Below are positions 1,738-54,119 of a DNA stretch of 64,000 nucleotides, piece after piece (within the stretch, counting starts at the first letter, position 1; each line of letters begins with the position of its first letter). A program made the position numbers and the translations under genes. This stretch comes from Podarcis filfolensis (taxonomy: Eukaryota), in assembly GCA_964270895.1 (NCBI GenBank), contig OZ185443.1; one strand, 5' to 3'. The notes beneath the pieces are model-generated. The model saw only the letters and a program-made list of their open reading frames with translations, was not told where the DNA came from and ran no database searches.

Positions 1738-3155
1738 TGCCATGACAAACTGTGACAGCGGCAAGGGCACTCTCTGGGCCACCCCAGCTAGGGACCTCCA
1801 TGACCCCTTCTCAGAGCAAGGTTAAGGCAAGGAGGAGGACAAGGTGTCATTAAAACCACCCGTGTTGCTGCCACTGCCAACACTAAAGCTAACTGATAGG
1901 TGGCAAGGGTGAAGTGGAGGATACCACTGCTGTCACTGTGAAGAGGAAGAGTGCAGTGGCATTGCATTCTTGTTGTGCCTACTACTTTTGTCTCTTGAGG
2001 AAAGTGATTTGATGGATAACACAAAGGTCCATCTAGTCCAGCACTCGCCATTGGTGGTGGCCAGGCAGATGCACAAGCTGGGATGATGGAGAGAGCTATT
2101 CCATGTCTTTGGCTTTGAAATGTGGATACCACAGGCCTCCAATATATACTCATAGCAAATTCTCTTGATTTTGGAGCTTTTCGAAGTCAAAATGTCACCA
2201 CCCAAGTACAGGAGGAAAGAATCAGCAGCATCAAAGAGCCCCAATCTTTGGGTTCCCACATTGCAGGAGTGCCAACCTGAATAAAATATTGAGGGGTCCA
2301 GGTAAGCCCTGCCTCACATAATCAAACACGGGATGTGGTGCACGCACACCACTTGAATGGCAATGCACATCAACTCTGGGGCAAGGGCCTTGAGCCCCTC
2401 AAATATTTTAGGGAGGGATGAAGGGACCTCGGCCCCTAGGAGTTGGCTCCTATGCCACTTTTGTGCAGAATTTGATGGATTTTTTAAAAATATATATTTA
2501 ATAGAGATTATGGGATAGTATTAGATGTGTGTTGTAATCAATGTATTGGGGCAATTCAAAGTATATAAGGAGCATCTCATGGAGGGACATTATACTGTGT
2601 GAAATGAAAAAATCCCAACCTAAGTTTACTAGCAGAGTTAATTTTTTGGACCACTGCAATCAGTGCCATGAAGAACACGCAAGACCAACTGCTGCCAGAA
2701 GCTAAGGAATTCTGGTGTGGGAAAGATCTGAACCTTGGGAAGTCCTGGGGAAGTCTTTCTTGGGGATTTGGCTATTACTTTCAATACAAGATCAGAAGAG
2801 GTCCCAAATAACTCCTTAACATGTTTCATCCATTGTTCGGCTTCACATAATTAGAAGTAATTTTTATCCCACTTTCCTCCATTATCATAAGTACATTTAC
2901 AACAATTCTAATTTGCATTAGTCACAGCACAGAGTGATCTTAGGAGTGGTAGCTATTTCCAACTAATTACTCTAAAATAAGAAGCATGTGGTGTTTAAAT
3001 GTACTCTAAAGATGTCATTCAATCTTTTTTTAAACTTCAGATTCCCAAGGTCTCTGCCAAAGACTTATTATTATAATGAAACTTAATGTGATTGCAAAAT
3101 AAATCAGGTTGTTTTAGTGTTGATAAGTAGCACCCCACCCACTTTTTTAGCCTAC

Positions 3156-3245
3156 CTGGTTGTTATACGCATCAGGTGCCAGTTTCTTGTAAGTGGGTGC
3201 CATCAGAGTCGAGAGAGTTTGCAAATTGGACTCCAGCTTTTCTTC
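3156..3245 (-). CDS. TET2: TET2 coding exon (human exon 8 equivalent, 90 nt)
   Basis: aaacag|GAA GAA AAG CTG..AAC AAC CAG|gtaggc = [30 protein letters not shown]. Confidence 0.98.
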
Positions 3246-3654
3246 CTGTTTTTCAGTAAAGGAGTGATTTCGCGTGTTAACATTCAACTGTATTAAGTTT
3301 ATATTGTAGTCCTAATTATCCATTACAAGCCAAAAAAGGGGGAGATGGAACGGAGATATTGCAATAGATTAAGTTACTGCAGTTACAATATTCAATGCTA
3401 GTAAATCGGGAAACACAGAGGAAAGTTAAGGTTATAAAATAGAGGAATTTTGAATTTGCAAATAAACCAGGGAAACTGCTGGCTTGGCAGCTAAAAAATG
3501 AATGAAGGGAGAATGGAGAAAAGATGAAAAGTGTGTTTCTGTGCATTTGTGTGAGAAGGGGAAGGAGGGAGGGAAAGGGCATCCTGCTCACTTCTAAACA
3601 AAAAATTTTTTTTCCTTCCAGTAGCACCTTAAAGACCAACTAAGTTAGTTCTTG

Positions 3655-3692
3655 GTATGAGCTTTCGTGTGCATGCACACTTCTTCAGATAC
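3655..3692 (-). ncRNA. Minimal type I hammerhead ribozyme motif (left arm, TET2-sense)
   Basis: GUAU-CUGAAGA-A-GUGUGC AU GCACAC-GAAA-GC-UC-AUAC: stem I GUAU/AUAC, core CUGANGA, 6-bp stem II, GAAA, palindromic AGCU mini-stem III, predicted cleavage after CUC. Confidence 0.75.
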
Positions 3693-4365
3693 ACTGAAAC
3701 AGAAGTTGCCAGATCCTTCTATATAGTGAGAAGGTGGGGAGGGGTATTACTCAGAAGGGTGGTGGGAATGGGTGGTTGGCAGATAGCTGAGATGAGCCTG
3801 TTGACGGCTCTTAACGACTGCAATAGGTCTTACAGGAAAAAGCAAGGGGTGAGAAGGTGAAAAATGGCTTTGTCATGTATAATGAGATAAGAATCCAATG
3901 TCTTTGTTCAGACCAGGTCTCTCCATGGTTTTAAGTTTGGTAATGAGTTGCAATTCAGCAGCTTCTCTTTCCAGTCTATTTCTGAAATTCCTTTGTAGTA
4001 ATACAGCTACTTTGAGATCTTGTATAGAATGTCCTGAGAGATTGAAGTGTTCTCCTACTGGTTTCTCTGTCTTGTGATTCTTGATGTCCGATTTATGTCC
4101 GTAAATGCAACTCATTACCAAACTTAAAACCATGGAGAGACCTGGTCTGAACAAAGACATTGGATTCTTATCTCATTATACATGACAAAGCCATTTTTCA
4201 CCTTCTCACCCCTTGCTTTTTCCTGTAAGACCTATTGCAGTCGTTAAGAGTCGTCAACAGGCTCATCACAGCTATCTGCCAATCACCCATTCCCACCACC
4301 CTTCTGAGTAATACCCCTCCCCACTTTCTCACTATATAGAAGGATCTGGCAACTTCTGTTTCAGT

Positions 4366-4403
4366 GTATCTGAAGAAGTGTGCATGCACACGAAAGCTCA
4401 TAC
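4366..4403 (+). ncRNA. Minimal type I hammerhead ribozyme motif (right arm, antisense to TET2)
   Basis: Identical motif gtat ctgaaga a gtgtgcatgcacac gaaa gc tc atac on the + strand. Confidence 0.75.
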
Positions 4404-4733
4404 CAAGAACTAACTTAGTTGGTCTTTAAGGTGCTACTGGAAGGAAAAAAATTTTTTTTTTTGTTTTGACTATGGCAGACCAACACGGCTACCTATCTGT
4501 AACTGCTCACTTCTGACTTTGACTCCACCCATTACCTGCATTCAGGCCCTGCCCACTTCCCCCTAGAGGAATGCAGCCCCTGACTTCAGAAAGGTTCCTC
4601 ACCTTCCTGCGTCAGACAGAAGAGGTAGATGGAAACACTTAGAAATAAATACCATTCTAGGGCGGAATGTTGTACTTTGACAAAACTTAAGACCATCATC
4701 TGACACTGTGAGTCATTTTTTAAAAATTGAGCT

Positions 4734-5134: not shown

Positions 5135-5329
<195 letters not shown>

Positions 5330-6676: not shown

Positions 6677-7390
6677 GTCTATTGGAATACATTTCCATGA
6701 AACCATATGAGTTCCTTAGGAAAATTGGTAGGGGAACACCCAACAGGAAGTTGTCTTCACAATATGACTGGGGCTGCAAAGACACAATACACTAAAATAC
6801 ACCCTCCCACAAAGAATCCTGGGAAATGTAGTTTACCCTTCCCAGAGCTGCAGTTCCCAGCACCCCAACAAACTACAGTTCCCAATATCCTTTTTTGTGT
6901 AGAGGGGGAAATGTGTTTTAAATGTATGGCATGTATGCAGACTGGGTAACTTCATTGAGCTAGGCACCACAAATGAAGCTTGCTCCCTATATGGTACTCC
7001 ATGTACTGGGCAGAATTTGTTGCAAGAAGTTTGATGCAGCAAGGAACATTAACAGCATCATGGTAGACATGGAACTAGACTCCAACCACTCATGCATATT
7101 GTCATGGCATAGTCCCAAAAGGGGTGTGCTGCAGAACTGAATGTGATGGGAATTGTGGCAATGATAGAAGGGAGGTGAAATGGGCTCTCTGTTAAACAAA
7201 GATGACTTTCTTGGTTACTGACAACATAAAGACAATAACTTCAGTGAGACCAATGACTAATGTCAGCTAAGAACATGAAAAGGAGAACATAGGATACATG
7301 ACTTCAGTAGGAATTATTGTTCCTTAAATCTAGACATTCAAGCTATAGCAAGACCACATTTTGAGAGAAACAAGTACATACTTCACTTAC

Positions 7391-7599
7391 TCTTCATTTA
7401 GAGCACAGCGACGGTTTGTTAGCGTGCCATACTTCCTTAAAGTTTCGGAGAGTTCGGAATACAGCTTGTCCGCTAGGCTTCGAGAAATTCCTTCCCACAC
7501 CAAGATAAGCACTACTATCACTGCTGTTTCACAGCTGTGGCCTGCACGTTCCCGTACCAAACAAAGGAGTTTTTCTTCAGTGCTACTTCTACGAATCAC
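7391..7599 (-). CDS. TET2: TET2 coding exon (human exon 6 equivalent, 209 nt), Cys-rich domain
   Basis: ttgcag|GTG ATT CGT..AAT GAA GA|gtaagt = [69 protein letters not shown](E). Includes the HxC zinc ligands and the NRR 2-oxoglutarate-binding arginine region. Confidence 0.99.
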
Positions 7600-8233
7600 C
7601 TGCAAATACAACCCCCCCAAAAGAAGTTTTCTGGTTTTTAGTGAGATACAAAATAGGATAGAATGTCTGTTTAAGGAAGACATTTATGCTCATATCCAGT
7701 CTGCCTGTAGCACAGTTTACTGCAGTGTTGTGCGCAGAAGGTTTTAGGTTCAATCCCTGTGATCTCAAAGTAGGAAAGACCCCTGCCTGAGATATTAGAC
7801 AGACGTCAATCAGAACAGACAAGACCGGGTTAGATGGACCAGCACCCTAAATAAATACAAGGCATTTCCCAACTTTGGGAGGCCTTTAATTGGAGGTACA
7901 TTTTCAAAATACTATACTTTCCTTAGCTCAGTCCAATACTATTACTAGGTTACATTTCATCTTTGTATACATTTTGTTTTGCAAATTTTGCATGATTGGG
8001 CAGCCGTGAACTTTGAGATACAGTCTGTGTTTAGGTATTTTTTAATATATATAAACTCATTTCAAAGTTATAATACCTCTTTTGACATCTATCCTAGATC
8101 AGAGGCTTAAAAAAAGTCAAAATGGTAATATTCTCTTTTAAAATGATCTGCATATTTACAGCAAACAAATACTAGTATTCTTTATTAAACTTAAAAAATA
8201 TCTTTTATATGATCAAGTGGGAAAAAGGCTTAC

Positions 8234-21685: not shown

Positions 21686-22869
21686 CTAACCTAGGGTAGG
21701 GTTAGCCAAATAAGTCTACCTTGGTTTCTCATTTTTCCAATCCTGTTTTCAGTGCATCCCATTTCCACATACATCTACAATTCTTTTTCTAAAGTCTACA
21801 TGAATATTTGAATGCACTTTCATGCAATCTCTTCCAATAGACACATTTTTGTGTGCAGTGTTGCCTAGTATATGCATTTGTGCAGGCAAGTTACCCATAA
21901 CAGAACGTATTTTAGCATGCACTTTACGCTAACATACACATTTTTGAGTGCATTCTTTGGCTGGGGAAAAAACCCTGTATTGCAAAATTCAGAGAAACGT
22001 GAATATGTCTCCTAATATCAAAAGCAAACAAATGGCTGCTTCACCCCTACTCTGGAGTACTTGTATGAAAATCAATGAAATGCTACCATAAATTGTGGTG
22101 GTAGCTATGGCCTAAGAATGTACTAGTGTGGGATTTCATGAGTCTGATGAAGCCGAGGAAATATGTCAAGATTAAGAAATCTTGGTCAAGTTCCACAGGT
22201 GTATGTTCAGTTTGAAATCTTTTAAGGCTGCAGCCCTGAAAGAAATGTAGCAGCAGCTGTTACAAAATAAATAAATAAATAAATGGATGACTCCCAAGCT
22301 GCATTTGGTAGTGAAGAGCCTTTGGAAAAATGAACAGCTGTGGATGGAAAAACATGAGCTAGCCACAGAGACTAATTATTAATTAAATCTAAAAAGCCAC
22401 TCCTTTAAATTGAAATGCATTGCTTTCAAAAGCATGTAGGGATTTGAAGCTCGGTTTCCTAAGGCCCAACTCATTACAGCAGTGTTCACAAGTAATCTTT
22501 TTTTCCTTCTTTTTTTTTTAGGTGGGGAGGAAGAGAAAAGAAACACCATTCGTGCACATTATAAAGCAGACTTACAAAGTGAATGGTATTTTTTTTTAAA
22601 AAAAGGTTACTAAAACACCTTGTAGTGCCTCCTGTGACCTTCCACCAATTGGCCCCTGCACCCCAATATTTTCCATTATTTCCTTCTTAATGTCTGGTTT
22701 CCCTATCAAAGGGAATTTTCATGCTCCCATTTTGTGCGTTGGTCTAACTGGCACCCCTCAATTCCCCTATGAGGCAGCTCCCTATGAAGAAACACTGGGG
22801 CCTTCCTTAGTTTGGGAAATGGTCAATAATGGAGAAGATGATAGAGGTGTATGTTATGTATCTCATAAT

Positions 22870-25620: not shown

Positions 25621-26180
25621 CTTGCCATGAAACCCAGACCAACACATGACAAGCACACGGTCCGCTTACCACATGTCAGTGGACGACAGAAAATTGTACA
25701 ACTGTGAAGAGGTTATACTGTGGTCATAAACAAGTATGCTGCTGTAGGTTTTTTTTAAGCAGACAAAGAGTAGCATTTAGCTGTAGAAGAAAAGGAAATT
25801 TATCAAGAAAGGAGATGGCACTTTCCAGTATAATAATGCCCACTCAAGAGCTCATAACCCACCTACTCTCAGCAGCCAGAAACATCTTAGCCAGACACTT
25901 TCAGGAGTAAACATGGACCAATGGTATCAAATAGTATGGAAAACAGCCTTATTAGAAAAACTAACTAATAAACTGTAACTGACATGGGGACAAATAGAAG
26001 AAGATGCCTTCACCCCGGTATGGCTCCTCTTTATCATATACATAGCCCAACAAGACAACGACAAGAATCCACTAACAGTATACTAATCAATCTGGATAAC
26101 CTGATAAAAAAAAAAACCCACTCACACATGAAAACAAAGTTCACCACAGCTAATCACAAACAAACAACCATATCCTAGGC

Positions 26181-26318
26181 CAGCGGTTCTCAACCTGTGG
26201 GTCCCCAGATGTTGTTGGACTACAACTCCCATCAACCCTGAGCTCTGGCCTTGCTAGCTAGGGGTGATGGGAGTTGTAGTTCAACAACATCTGGGGACCC
26301 ATAGGTTGAGGAAGGCTG
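26181..26318. mobile_element. hAT hairpin MITE (same family as 9214)
   Basis: Palindromic; 8-bp TSD TCCTAGGC/CCCTAGGC. Confidence 0.8.
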
Positions 26319-29050
26319 CCCTAGGCCAACCCCAACCTGTCTCGCCACCAAAGGAATACAAGAGAATAATAAAGAGAACCCGCACAAGCAGCGCCGACAC
26401 AAAACCCCACACATACATTAAGTAGAACAGAAGCATTGCCACCCCACCCTACCCCCACTCACCACAGCCCCCTCCACCTCTTTCCCCCTTTTCTTCCTAA
26501 TGTAACACTAATGTCTCAACAAATGAAACTGATCTGTAGAAAATGTAACTTGAAAAAAGCACATATTTTTGTAAACCAAGAAATCTTTAATGAAAAATGT
26601 TAAAAAAAGAAAAAGAAGATGGTACTTATCAATATTCTGATGAAATAAATAAATAAAATAAAATAAAATAAGGACATATTTCAGATACAACAACAACTGC
26701 TGTACTTTAGGCTGCAAACACACTAATCAATTTATAACACAAAAATACAGTCGTTTCCCCCCCCCCCCCCAATCTGGAATAATTCATGCTCTTCCACAGC
26801 CTGCTGCTTTCAATCTAGTTTCCAGCGCCTGCTACCAAGAAGGGTAGGTGCAGTTGCAAGATATGCATTTGACAACCCTCCCCTTGATTAGGCCATACAT
26901 GTTTTCTCCTCTCTGTTCATGCCCAGACGTACACGAAGAAGGAAGAGAAGATTGTGATGCTAGTAGCTGAGACCACCTACATCTATTTTCAAATGGACAC
27001 ACTGAAGTAATCAATCTACAACACATTTTAATTTCTGTAATGAAACCAGTCTCTTAAGCACGTTTCAGGGGCAAAAAAGTATGCAATAGATCTATTTTGT
27101 GTGCGGACTACATAGAAAGTCTCCATTGTACACAACCTTACTATTAGTATTAGAGTTGACTGCGTAACATTGCACCTGTTCGCTTATCGGGTACCAAATG
27201 GGTTACCTACTGAGATGAAGTCACCTGGAGCTGGACCAAAATGCCCTTGCAGCAAGAGACCACTATGGGGTAAAAATCTGCTATTTTGGAAGAAGTGCGC
27301 AAACTCTGGCTGAATCTGCAGTGTGCACAGAAAGGTTTGGGCATAATTATTTATGTTTGGATAGATGAATTTTCACATAACAAGCAGGCAGATAGCAGGA
27401 CCTGTGTGTATCATGAATGGGTACATTATGGGGAGTCGGATTTTTGTTGCATGAATGGATCCTACTTTTGTGCAACCTGTAAATGATGTGATGGGTCTGT
27501 TCACACAACCAGCTAAATGTGACCATGTCAGGGGCAAGGCAAACCTCTCTCCTCAACACATTCATTGTACCTAGATTGAACATATGAACTGGGCTATTGC
27601 TGTCAACACTGGAGGGGGGATATTCAGGATTTTATATATATTCACATACACGCACACACACATATACACCACTGTACCACAAAAAAGATATCAAAAGTGG
27701 CTTACGACAATTAGAACATAAAACCAATCAGTAAAGACATAAAAAGGTGAAAAACAAGTTAAAAACAAAAATCAGAATGAGGGCAATCGGTTTTGGATGG
27801 GATCACCCTAGGAAGCAGTCCTTAACAAACAAACAAACCCACAGACACAGCAGTGAGAATAGTGACTGAAAGCACCCAAAAGCACAATTTCCCCACCCTT
27901 TGAACACGGTAATGGATGAACAGTTAGTGCAGCTCTAATTTACAGATAGCTTTTTCCAAAAATGAGGGGGTGGGGATGACTTTCAGTATTTTTATTATGC
28001 CTCCAGGCTGACCTAGTGAACCTAATATTTTTCAGTTGCTCAACAGTTTCATAAAAGCAGGCAGGTGGTACCCCTTACAACAGGGCTGATGTGAAACTAA
28101 AGCACTGCCCGTAATGAAGACAGAAACGAGAAAGTGTGCACTCAGAGACCAGGAAAAGAACAAAGATGCAGATTGTTTCATTGGTCTCTTCTAATTTTAA
28201 TTAGGGTCTTCTTGGTGGGGAAGATTGAGATTATTCCAAGGAAGTCCCTGGTTCTTTACACATTCTCATTCGCTCCCCACAGAATGAATAATCACCCTCC
28301 TGCTTTTTTGCTCCGTGCTCTTTTTTTTTGACAGAAGACACCCACAAAAAATCTAAATTCTGCATTGTTTTGCAATTAACATGCTGAGTAAATGCAGCCG
28401 CATCCCCAAAGGATTTTGAGTGATGCAAAATGTCCTTTCACTGTGAGATACAAAAGCTGAAGCTTGTTAATGTTAAAGAAACCTGTGCTCTTTGAAGTCT
28501 GGAAACACTGAATCTGTTTTCAGTGAGGGACTATTCTTCCCAAGGCTCTCTTGTTAAAGGAACAAAAGGAGAGAAAAGCGCTTCCCCCTTTCTCAATGCG
28601 CTTCGGAGAATCTATTAGCTTTTGTGCAGAAGCATCAGCGACTGGCAGAAATTGCCTGCCATTTTGATTGGGCTGCATTAAGATACATTAATCGGTTGCC
28701 CGCCGTCTCAAACCTCCCCTGTTTTGCTCCCGTTTCCAATCATCCTCTCACTCCCATAACTCAGCTGTCAGAGATGCTTCCAGCACTTCTGCTGTTGTTG
28801 CATCTCGCAGGCAGACCTCCATCCCTAGAAGAAAATAAATCCTTGTACATAATACACCAGAGATGTGAACCGGATATGGAAGACATTAAAATGGAGGGTA
28901 TTGTTGTCCAGGCTGCTGCTGAACTCAAATTTTAAGAAAAACGATTGCCCTGAGTCAGCTTTATGGCTTTCGTGAAAGGAAATAGTTTACACTTCCTCTG
29001 GTTTGTTTGCTTGTTCTTTCACCACTCAGGAAAGGGAGTGGGGAATCGCA

Positions 29051-32098: not shown

Positions 32099-32714
32099 TT
32101 ATATTTATCTTACTCGGCACCAAATCCTGTGTTCTTGATCACAGAGTAAATGAACCAGACAGTAGAAAATGGAGGGAGAATTCAGCCATAATACTGTGGA
32201 GGTGGTAAAGAAACAGTGTTTTGTTTGACTCACGTCTGTGTGATCATCTTCCTTCTCTGAGCTAACTTTCAACCAACTGCATGACAAAGTGAGAATGTGG
32301 TTTTGCATTTCCTGTGGTTTGCTTTCTGAGCAAGATCTAAATCAAGAGGCAGTGAATGCTGTGGTCGTTAATGCTCTAAAAAGCATGTGGATACAGCAAG
32401 GAGGCTGGAAAATAAATATCATAAGGATGGCTTGCCCATCACTTCTTGTGTCACCTGCACCTATCACCGCCATTCAGTAAGAATGGCTGCTTTCCCTCTC
32501 TGTCTGCTCACAGTGTGTGCTCATCCGACAGTCAAATATAGGAGAGCTCTGTGGCTACCTCAGTTCTGGCACTTTCACTTTTTTCTCACTGTTGAAGACA
32601 GAAATGGGAAGGGTGGGGAGGCAGACCACAGAGGCAGCAGCCGTAGCACATTGCTGTGTTTCTCCCAGACAGAGAATTCTCCAAAGCGTGCTTTGGCTAA
32701 ACTTAGGTGGAATC

Positions 32715-33144
32715 TAGACACATATGGAAGTGAGAGCTGGACCATAAAGAAGGCTGATCGCCGAAGAATTGATGCTTTTGAATTATGGTGCTGGAGGAGA
32801 CTCTTGAGAGTCCCTTGGACTGCAAGAAGATCAAACCATTTCCATTCTTAAGGAAATCAGTGCTCACTGGAAGGACAGATCCTGAAGCTGAGGCTCCAGT
32901 ACTTTGGCCACCTCAGTAGAAGAGAAGACTCCCTGGAAAAGACCCTGATGTTGGGAAAGATGGAGGGCACAAGGAGAAGGGGACGACAGAGGACGAGATG
33001 GTTGGACAGTGTTCTCGAAGCCACCAGCATGAGTTTGACCAAACTGCGGGAGGCAGTGGAAGACAGGAGTGCCTGGCGTGCTCTGGTCCATGGGGTCACG
33101 AAGAGTCGGATACGACTAAATGACTAAACAACAACAACAACAAC
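32715..33144 (+). mobile_element. BovB (RTE) LINE 3' fragment
   Basis: YGSESWTIKKADRRRIDAFELWCWRRLLRVPWTARRSN..SLEKTLMLGKMEG..RRRGRQRTRWLDSV; tail cgactaaatgactaaacaacaacaac. Confidence 0.92.
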
Positions 33145-53134: not shown

Positions 53135-54119
53135 CTAGTGGGGTGCCACAGGGTTCTGTCTTGGGCCCGGTCTTATTCAACATCTTTATCAACGACTTGG
53201 ATGATGGACTCAAGGGCATCCTGATCAAATTTGCAGATGACACCAAACTGGGAGGGGTGGCTAACACCGCAGAGGACAGGATCACACTTCAAAACGACCT
53301 TGACAGATTAGAGAACTGGGCCAAAACAAACAAGATGAATTTTAACAGGGAGAAATGTAAAGTATTGCACTTGGGCAAAAAAATGAGAGGCACAAATACA
53401 AGATGGGTGACACCTGGCTTGAGAGCAGTACATGGGAAAAGGATCTAGGAGTCTTGGTTGACCACAAACTTGACATGAGCCAACAGTGTGACGCGGCAGC
53501 TAAAAAAGCCAATGCAATTCTGGGCTGCATCAATAGGAGTATAGCATCTAGATCAAGGGAAGTAATAGTGCCACTGTATTCTGCTCTGGTCAGACCTCAC
53601 CTGGAGTACTGTGTCCAGTTCTGGGCACCACAGTTCAAGAAGGACACTGACAAACTGGAACGTGTCCAGAGGAGGGCAACCAAAATGGTCAAAGGCCTGG
53701 AAACGATGCCTTATGAGGAACGGCTAAGGGAGCTGGGCATGTTTAGCCTGGAGAAGAGGAGGTTAAGGGGTGACATGATAGCCATGTTCAAATATATAAA
53801 AGGATGTCACATAGAGGAGGGAGAAAGGTTGTTTTCTGCTGCTCCAGAGAAGCGGACACGGAGCAATGGTTCCAAACTACAAGAAAGAAGATTCCACCTA
53901 AACATTAGGAAGAACTTCCTGACAGTAAGAGCTGTTCGACAGTGGAATTTGCTGCCAAGGAGTGTGGTGGAGTCTCCTTCTTTGGAGGTCTTTAAGCAGA
54001 GGCTTGACAACCATAGGTCAGGAGTGCTCTGATGGTGTTTCCTGCTTGGCAGGGGGTTGGACTCGATGGCCCTTGTCGTCTCTTCCAACTCTATGATTCT
54101 ATGATTCTATGATTCTATG
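53135..54119 (+). mobile_element. CR1 LINE 3' fragment (RT domain, frameshifted), young
   Basis: [52 protein letters not shown]-type RT motifs, (ATTCTATG)n tail, 12-bp direct repeat ATTCAATCAGAA at 53123-53134 and 54120-54131. Confidence 0.95.

Follow-up and report, generated by a model that had tools for sequence, protein, structure and literature searches.

The window analyzed here, a stretch of 64,000 nucleotides from Podarcis filfolensis (contig OZ185443.1 of assembly GCA_964270895.1) whose letters include no N, carries on its minus strand a series of exons running from a long N-terminal exon to an exon with the HxD iron-binding motif (15419-11940, 7683-7390, 5297-5147, 3245-3156 and 743-606), and an insertion with two hammerhead ribozyme motifs lies in one of the introns between them (Table 1). 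Splice sites were read from the sequence, and the exons were searched one by one, not as a joined coding sequence. Pieces of the Pfam domain Tet_JBP follow one another along the minus strand in the order of the profile, at 5135-5329 (profile positions 1-29), 3147-3287 (17-60) and 597-770 (55-103), and the HxD exon has a PDB match to TET2 (E = 1e-29). Human TET2 chains are matched in consecutive order by the exon at 7390-7683, the next one upstream, and by two of the Tet_JBP pieces; identities are 90-94% where alignments were printed (64 of 71 and 48 of 51 residues); the latter figure is that of the 151-nt exon, aligned with residues 142-192 of chain 5d9y_A. The exon at 15419-11940, which encodes 1159 amino acids, contains no Pfam domain and hence no CXXC finger; its start appears to resemble the TET2 N terminus, and the exon lengths of 151, 90 and 138 nt presumably equal those of human TET2 exons 7 to 9. 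Judged from sequence, the host gene is TET2, transcribed from the minus strand: the Tet_JBP exons with HxD, the near-identity to TET2 and the long N-terminal exon without a CXXC domain agree with the gene named in the preliminary description of this locus.

The insertion makes up 48% of the 1901-nt intron 5146-3246, with 644 nt between it and the donor and 350 nt on the acceptor side. It had been placed earlier between the exons encoding the zinc region and the HxD motif; on the upstream side this stands, as the Cys-rich exon of 151 nt is indeed the preceding one, but the next exon downstream is the 90-nt exon 3245-3156, and HxD follows one intron further on.

Table 1. Positions of the TET2 exons, the Penelope-like element (PLE) copies and the hammerhead motifs within the 64-kb window
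Feature	Position	Strand	Remarks
Cys-rich exon, start of Tet_JBP	5147-5297	minus	151 nt; acceptor AG 5299-5298, donor GT 5146-5145; upstream of insertion
Exon downstream of insertion	3156-3245	minus	90 nt, 30 codons; Tet_JBP profile positions 17-60
HxD iron-binding motif exon	606-743	minus	138 nt; one intron further downstream; Tet_JBP E = 6.6e-18
Target-site duplication, left copy	3584-3595		CTGCTCACTTCT; perfect 12-bp direct repeat adjoining insertion; no strand
Target-site duplication, right copy	4503-4514		12-mer identical to left copy, CTGCTCACTTCT; no strand
PLE copy A	3596-4102	minus (4102 to 3596)	About 507 nt, 5'-truncated; endonuclease C-terminal coding remnant and 3' UTR; sense to TET2
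PLE copy B	4103-4502	plus	400 nt, 5'-truncated; antisense to TET2; arm 98% complementary to 3596-3955
One-sided tail	4463-4502	plus	Last 36-40 nt; outside inverted repeat, inside target-site duplication
PLE ORF remnant	3876-4103	minus	76 codons, C-terminal half of GIY-YIG endonuclease; stop 3875-3873
Minimal type I hammerhead	3692-3655	minus	Sense in TET2 pre-mRNA; C17 at 3659; predicted scissile bond 3659/3658
Minimal type I hammerhead	4366-4403	plus	C17 at 4399; TET2 transcript holds only its complement
Plus motif, helix I 5' strand	4366-4369	plus	
Plus motif, core CUGAAGA	4370-4376	plus	
Plus motif, unpaired A	4377	plus	
Plus motif, helix II	4378-4391	plus	
Plus motif, GAAA	4392-4395	plus	
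Plus motif, GC	4396-4397	plus	
Plus motif, U16.1-C17	4398-4399	plus	
Plus motif, helix I 3' strand	4400-4403	plus	

Anatomy and identity of the insertion

A target-site duplication of 12 bp adjoins the 907-bp insertion at both ends and bears out the limits, 3596 and 4502, that had been proposed for it. Between these limits lie two 5'-truncated copies of one retroelement, joined at a head-to-head junction. The inverted repeat arms (3596-3955 and 4103-4462) measure 360 nt each and are 98% complementary, with seven mismatches, two of which fall in a terminal A/T run; they are separated by a unique spacer of 147 nt (3956-4102), which together with the first arm makes up copy A. Copy B comprises the last 26 codons of the element's ORF (4105-4182), the stop codon (4183-4185), the 3' UTR and the one-sided tail. 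Beyond 3596-4502, the 64-kb window contains no further copy of the element. The sole other inverted repeat found at the search settings used, with 66-nt arms at 26174-26239 and 26260-26325 that are 89% complementary and a spacer of 20 nt, is possibly a small hairpin-forming transposon (26174-26325).

That one target-site duplication encloses the entire composite is an argument for a single insertion event, and we infer that both copies arrived together by one retrotransposition. The 98% identity of the arms suggests that the insertion is fairly recent. PLE insertions have been described as carrying an adjacent inverted 5'-truncated copy and a tail of 30-40 bp at one end (PMC8557442), and the insertion structure of EN+ PLEs, that is, 5' truncation, adjacent inverted copy, one-sided tail and target-site duplication, is found complete at 3596-4502.

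The coding remnant required some care, as the minus-strand ORF in which it lies (4160-3873) is partly an artefact, its first 19 codons being the antisense of the other arm. Neither this 95-aa ORF nor the 76-codon remnant had a match in Pfam, and a word-based protein search returned two short fragments only. An exhaustive search of representative proteins with the 76-codon remnant yielded 251 relatives at E<=1e-3, 44 of them at E<=1e-10. In the longer relatives, ten of which were scanned with Pfam, the match sits at the extreme C terminus; RVT_1 was found upstream in seven of the ten; nine have a GIY-YIG domain, in some cases a weak one, that immediately precedes the match or overlaps it. The relative P0004 has RVT_1 at 28-193, GIY-YIG at 500-549 and the match to the remnant at 528-600. 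Endonuclease-encoding PLEs are built in this way, with a reverse transcriptase and, C-terminal to it, a GIY-YIG endonuclease (PMC4209133, PMC8557442). The copy in the window keeps only the last 76 codons of the ORF and has lost the reverse transcriptase through 5' truncation. On the protein matches, the element is an endonuclease-encoding PLE; the position of the remnant's match, at the C terminus of proteins with RVT_1 and then GIY-YIG, sustains the earlier assignment to Penelope-like elements.

Several observations were made on these relatives and on other retroelement sequences in the window. P0001, an ENA fragment of 86 aa, begins with about 32 residues that resemble the antisense translation of the hammerhead region (plus-strand ORF 3657-3860); its first 17 residues match this hammerhead-antisense ORF save at one position, and the sequence then runs straight into the endonuclease tail. 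As far as the protein can tell, P0001 seems to represent a further Penelope palindrome of the head-to-head kind whose junction differs, and its R-to-C difference would fit CpG decay at C11.1-G12, a change that would kill its ribozyme. Three further relatives (P0003, P0010 and P0011) are chimeric gene models, in which a CARD is combined with a GIY-YIG tail or MROH2B-like HEAT repeats with GIY-YIG; judging from these models, predicted host genes seem to have taken up Penelope fragments, via either exonisation or annotation error. Two ORFs on the plus strand, 53403-54032 (209 aa) and 32387-32851 (154 aa), we take to be similar to the C-terminal part of LINE reverse transcriptases (CR1-like; BovB/RTE-like), and they would presumably be further retroelement relics upstream of TET2.

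Hammerhead motifs in both arms

Both arms contain an intact minimal hammerhead, and the motif written out in the preliminary description agrees base for base with 3692-3655 on the minus strand and 4366-4403 on the plus strand; the cut predicted there between 3659 and 3658 is also correct, C17 of the minus copy being position 3659. The conserved positions C3-U4-G5-A6-N7-G8-A9, G12-A13-A14, A15.1-U16.1 and H17 are all present in the two copies, with an unpaired A at 4377 and 3681, respectively. Helix II opens with G and closes with C over 5-6 bp and is, in both arms, a 14-nt palindrome of 5 bp with a CAUG loop. Helix III is reduced to A-GC-U, that is, the palindrome AGCU without a loop 3, in agreement with the earlier classification as minimal type I hammerheads with a palindromic stem III. 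Since the two arms both retain the complete catalytic core, with the CpG at C11.1-G12, the sequence by itself is compatible with activity. On the sense strand of the element the hammerhead core begins 185 nt 3' of the ORF stop, and the motif has every feature given for PLE minimal hammerheads (PMC4209133). As TET2 runs on the minus strand, its pre-mRNA contains exactly one sense ribozyme, that at 3692-3655, as had been claimed.

A check with Rfam models or a motif descriptor, as suggested in the preliminary description, gave a divided answer. None of the Rfam 15 hammerhead models (Hammerhead_1, Hammerhead_3, Hammerhead_II, HH9 and HH10) reached its gathering threshold anywhere in the 64 kb, and over 3500-4560 at E<=10 they returned nothing, the sole match being a chance one to snoZ223 (E = 5.8). 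We presume that the models miss these motifs because curated hammerhead models expect a closed helix III. By contrast, a full descriptor (4-bp helix I, core, optional bulge, G-C-closed helix II, GAAA, palindromic insert, U, non-G) found exactly two sites in the 64 kb, which are those in the two arms; it found no site in 300 dinucleotide-shuffled versions of the window. A less strict IUPAC pattern, allowing at most two mismatches, found the same two sites only, a count of 2 against 0.68 expected that is not significant alone. The two copies cannot be counted as independent, because both come from one insertion.

As an independent test set we used 45 metagenomic loci whose encoded proteins are distantly related to the endonuclease tail; the greater part of them align with most of it at 31-61% identity, and the remainder with short stretches only. 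Viral contigs searched with the same endonuclease-tail alignment contained no relative. With a descriptor loosened for these loci (helix I of at least 3 bp, helix II of 3-9 bp with or without G-C closure), 12 matches were obtained against 0.01 expected. All but one (11) lie on the coding strand, ten of these 11 downstream of the protein match and seven of the ten at 119-128 nt after it. The helix sequences in the metagenomic loci are entirely different from those of the window motifs with pairing retained, and their helix III palindromes include AUAU, ACGU, ACCGGU and AUUAAU, against AGCU in the window. A covariance model, R1, was built from nine of the metagenomic motifs only, with a structure given by hand and two rows imperfectly aligned; a MAFFT alignment of the divergent hammerheads was misaligned and was set aside for the hand-structured one. 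Over the 128 kb searched, R1 ranked both window sites first (21.6 bits, at a rough E of ~0.0025), matching them over its full length with all helix pairs kept.

These results bear on the possibility that the motif is a chance likeness to a hammerhead inside an unrelated palindrome. Such a likeness would be in keeping with the missing Rfam match and with a monomer fold that is no better than that of shuffles (z = 0.02), but its probability is negligible: it is refuted by the descriptor with its zero matches in 300 shuffles, by the metagenomic loci, where the motif has the same placement 3' of a PLE endonuclease tail in unrelated PLEs, and by the independent covariance model.

Predicted behavior in TET2 pre-mRNA

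In the folding models, the whole insertion forms one hairpin of -697 kcal/mol, in which all 38 of the 38 ribozyme nucleotides are paired to the other arm. As TET2 is transcribed from 4502 towards 3596, synthesis of the ribozyme's complement precedes that of the ribozyme by about 700 nt. Nascent RNA was modeled with its end at either 15 nt or 409 nt beyond the motif, and in these models the motif pairs to the antisense arm with a probability of 0.997-1.0, against approximately 0 for a local helix II. The monomer cannot close helix III, since it has the AGCU palindrome only and no loop, and an AGCU/AGCU duplex contributes -3.9 kcal/mol. No second sense motif on the TET2 strand was found within the 64-kb window by either the descriptor or the covariance model, a search that covered the window, parts of TET2 lying outside it. 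For two copies of the motif, RNAcofold prefers an intermolecular duplex of 14 bp between the helix II sequences (-30.6 kcal/mol versus 2 x -6.8 kcal/mol), which is probably inactive, as the two AGCU elements end up at its opposite ends; the active dimer would be a kissing contact between two multiloops, a form that nested dot-bracket does not represent.

The reading that we favor, with a probability of roughly 0.8, is that of a single PLE event whose hammerhead is a passenger in TET2 pre-mRNA, masked by the hairpin and inert. It would comprise the following steps: (i) one PLE retrotransposition would have put two 5'-truncated head-to-head copies into a 1.9-kb TET2 intron among the catalytic-domain exons, each copy bringing the minimal hammerhead of the element's own 3' UTR; (ii) the antisense arm (4462 to 4103) would be transcribed first, and the sense arm (3955 to 3596) would zip onto it from the loop end; (iii) the ribozyme would enter the 360-bp duplex on emergence, and helices I and II would never form; (iv) even if unmasked, the ribozyme would be left alone without a helix III, with no second sense copy in the window to supply one; and (v) the outcome would be no meaningful self-cleavage, the intron being removed together with the hairpin by normal splicing. 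From these models we infer that the ribozyme would be inactive in vivo; folding at equilibrium takes no account of helicases, RNA-binding proteins or ADAR editing, each of which could loosen the duplex. In the life cycle of the element, the motif is thought in the literature to process multimeric PLE transcripts as a dimer, a role that is itself unproven.

The preliminary description listed three fates for the sense ribozyme, namely, co-transcriptional self-cleavage, dimerization via AGCU with other Penelope transcripts and inactivation by pairing with the antisense arm, and only the last of these gains support from computation, through the predicted hairpin fold (P ~1.0). It went on to propose a transposon-derived RNA switch in a DNA demethylase gene, in which the sense hammerhead would cut TET2 pre-mRNA alone, in trans with Penelope transcripts or upon opening of the hairpin, and would lower TET2 output. 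An intact, TET2-sense core in an intron of the catalytic-domain region is what such a switch would need to start from, but the proposal does not hold up well, and we regard it as highly improbable: with AGCU and no loop as helix III the monomer cannot fold, the 4-bp contact available in trans is worth only about -3.9 kcal/mol, no cis partner is present in the window, the antisense arm, made first, is predicted to hold the entire ribozyme in the duplex, and the insertion, with arms 98% identical, looks fairly recent. Published minimal hammerheads also cut poorly even as dimers: single PLE motifs reportedly do not cleave and their dimers cleave slowly and poorly (PMC4209133), and eight of nine Xenopus dimer constructs did not cleave (bioRxiv 10.64898/2026.07.22.740005). 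Approximately 43% of Xenopus retrozyme copies overlap introns (bioRxiv 10.64898/2026.07.22.740005), and an intronic location is thus commonplace for related hammerhead-bearing elements. A version in which the 360-bp hairpin serves as a conditional mask, with ADAR or a helicase freeing the ribozyme in some tissues and AGCU pairing with abundant Penelope transcripts leading to cleavage of TET2 pre-mRNA, would tie TET2 output to transposon expression, and we find it barely credible. If the ribozyme truly cut TET2 pre-mRNA, DNA demethylation would be connected to transposon activity in a new way; the evidence argues against such cleavage.

In animals, ADAR typically acts on long inverted repeats within introns, and what matters at this locus might be the 360-bp intronic double-stranded RNA itself, with the ribozyme irrelevant and the duplex acting as a substrate for ADAR hyper-editing or small-RNA production that may slightly affect processing of the intron. 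The near-perfect 360-bp duplex with its 147-nt loop, wholly within one intron, would suit this explanation, but the argument is generic to any inverted transposon pair, both arms lie in the same intron with no exon looped out, and the element adds no AATAAA within 3596-4502 on either strand; we consider the explanation unlikely. In the whole window, AATAAA occurs 117 times on both strands against 61 expected from shuffles, an excess that reflects AT-rich low-complexity runs (e.g., 22266-22283 and 26644-26667), not signals.

The element might also be seen as a non-autonomous retrozyme, a hammerhead-bearing tandem repeat making circular RNAs. Metazoan non-LTR retrozymes share with the window motif a type I hammerhead and a short palindromic helix III, and they are evolutionarily linked to the pseudo-LTRs of PLEs (PMC7229834; bioRxiv 10.64898/2026.07.22.740005). 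Retrozymes, however, are direct tandem repeats without coding sequence, and the window has an inverted pair only, with no direct or tandem repeat; the endonuclease coding sequence that is present points to a truncated autonomous element, and a circle needs two sense cuts, for which there is one sense motif per strand. The repeat structure contradicts a retrozyme, and we give this explanation hardly any weight.

If, as we favor, the hammerhead is an inert passenger, the finding matters little beyond annotation, as a clean and well-delimited single-event head-to-head Penelope-like insertion with twin intact hammerheads. The segment 3596-4502 could be of use as a positive control for hammerhead descriptors where Rfam models miss. 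Regulation does not follow from the mere presence of an intact sense-strand ribozyme in a gene, and here the inverted architecture is predicted to mask it.

Comparison with known hammerhead-bearing elements

The amniote intronic hammerheads HH9 and HH10 are deeply conserved and cleave fast as monomers, and they possess a stable helix III as well as tertiary contacts between loops. The window motif, which appears to have none of these features, differs from HH9 and HH10 in that it has no helix III as a monomer and is not matched by the Rfam models, and in that its 98% identical arms suggest a fairly recent insertion. It resembles them in being a type I hammerhead located in the sense orientation in a host intron (de la Pena & Garcia-Robles 2010, as cited in PMC4209133).

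The likeness to EN+ PLEs (Penelope/Poseidon, Neptune and Nematis; PMC8557442) is much closer, and comprises the GIY-YIG C-terminal remnant, the 5' truncation, the inverted truncated neighbor, the one-sided tail (30-40 bp in the published elements), the target-site duplication and the hammerhead near the 3' end. The window copy differs from these elements in having no reverse transcriptase part, which is a consequence of truncation.

With respect to the motifs themselves, the minimal hammerheads in PLE repeats were described by Cervera & de la Pena in 2014, together with the bulged nucleotide, the G10.1-C11.1 pair, the palindromic 15.2-16.2 and the requirement for a dimer (PMC4209133); the same paper reported dual motifs 100-700 bp apart on opposite strands, as well as motifs in reptiles. 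PLE minimal hammerheads were also treated by Lunse, Weinberg & Breaker (RNA Biol), as cited in PMC6765202. The hammerheads at this locus are standard PLE parts, and all of their features, twin motifs on opposite strands included, were already published in 2014. The window motif shares with the PLE minimal hammerheads the canonical core, one unpaired nucleotide between A9 and 10.1, G10.1-C11.1, a long helix II, an open helix I of 4 bp, a palindromic 15.2-16.2 without loop 3 and a location in the 3' part or pseudo-LTR of the element. Nothing substantial differs between them; what sets the window copy apart is that it comes from a lizard, lies in TET2 and has as its helix II a perfect 14-nt palindrome.
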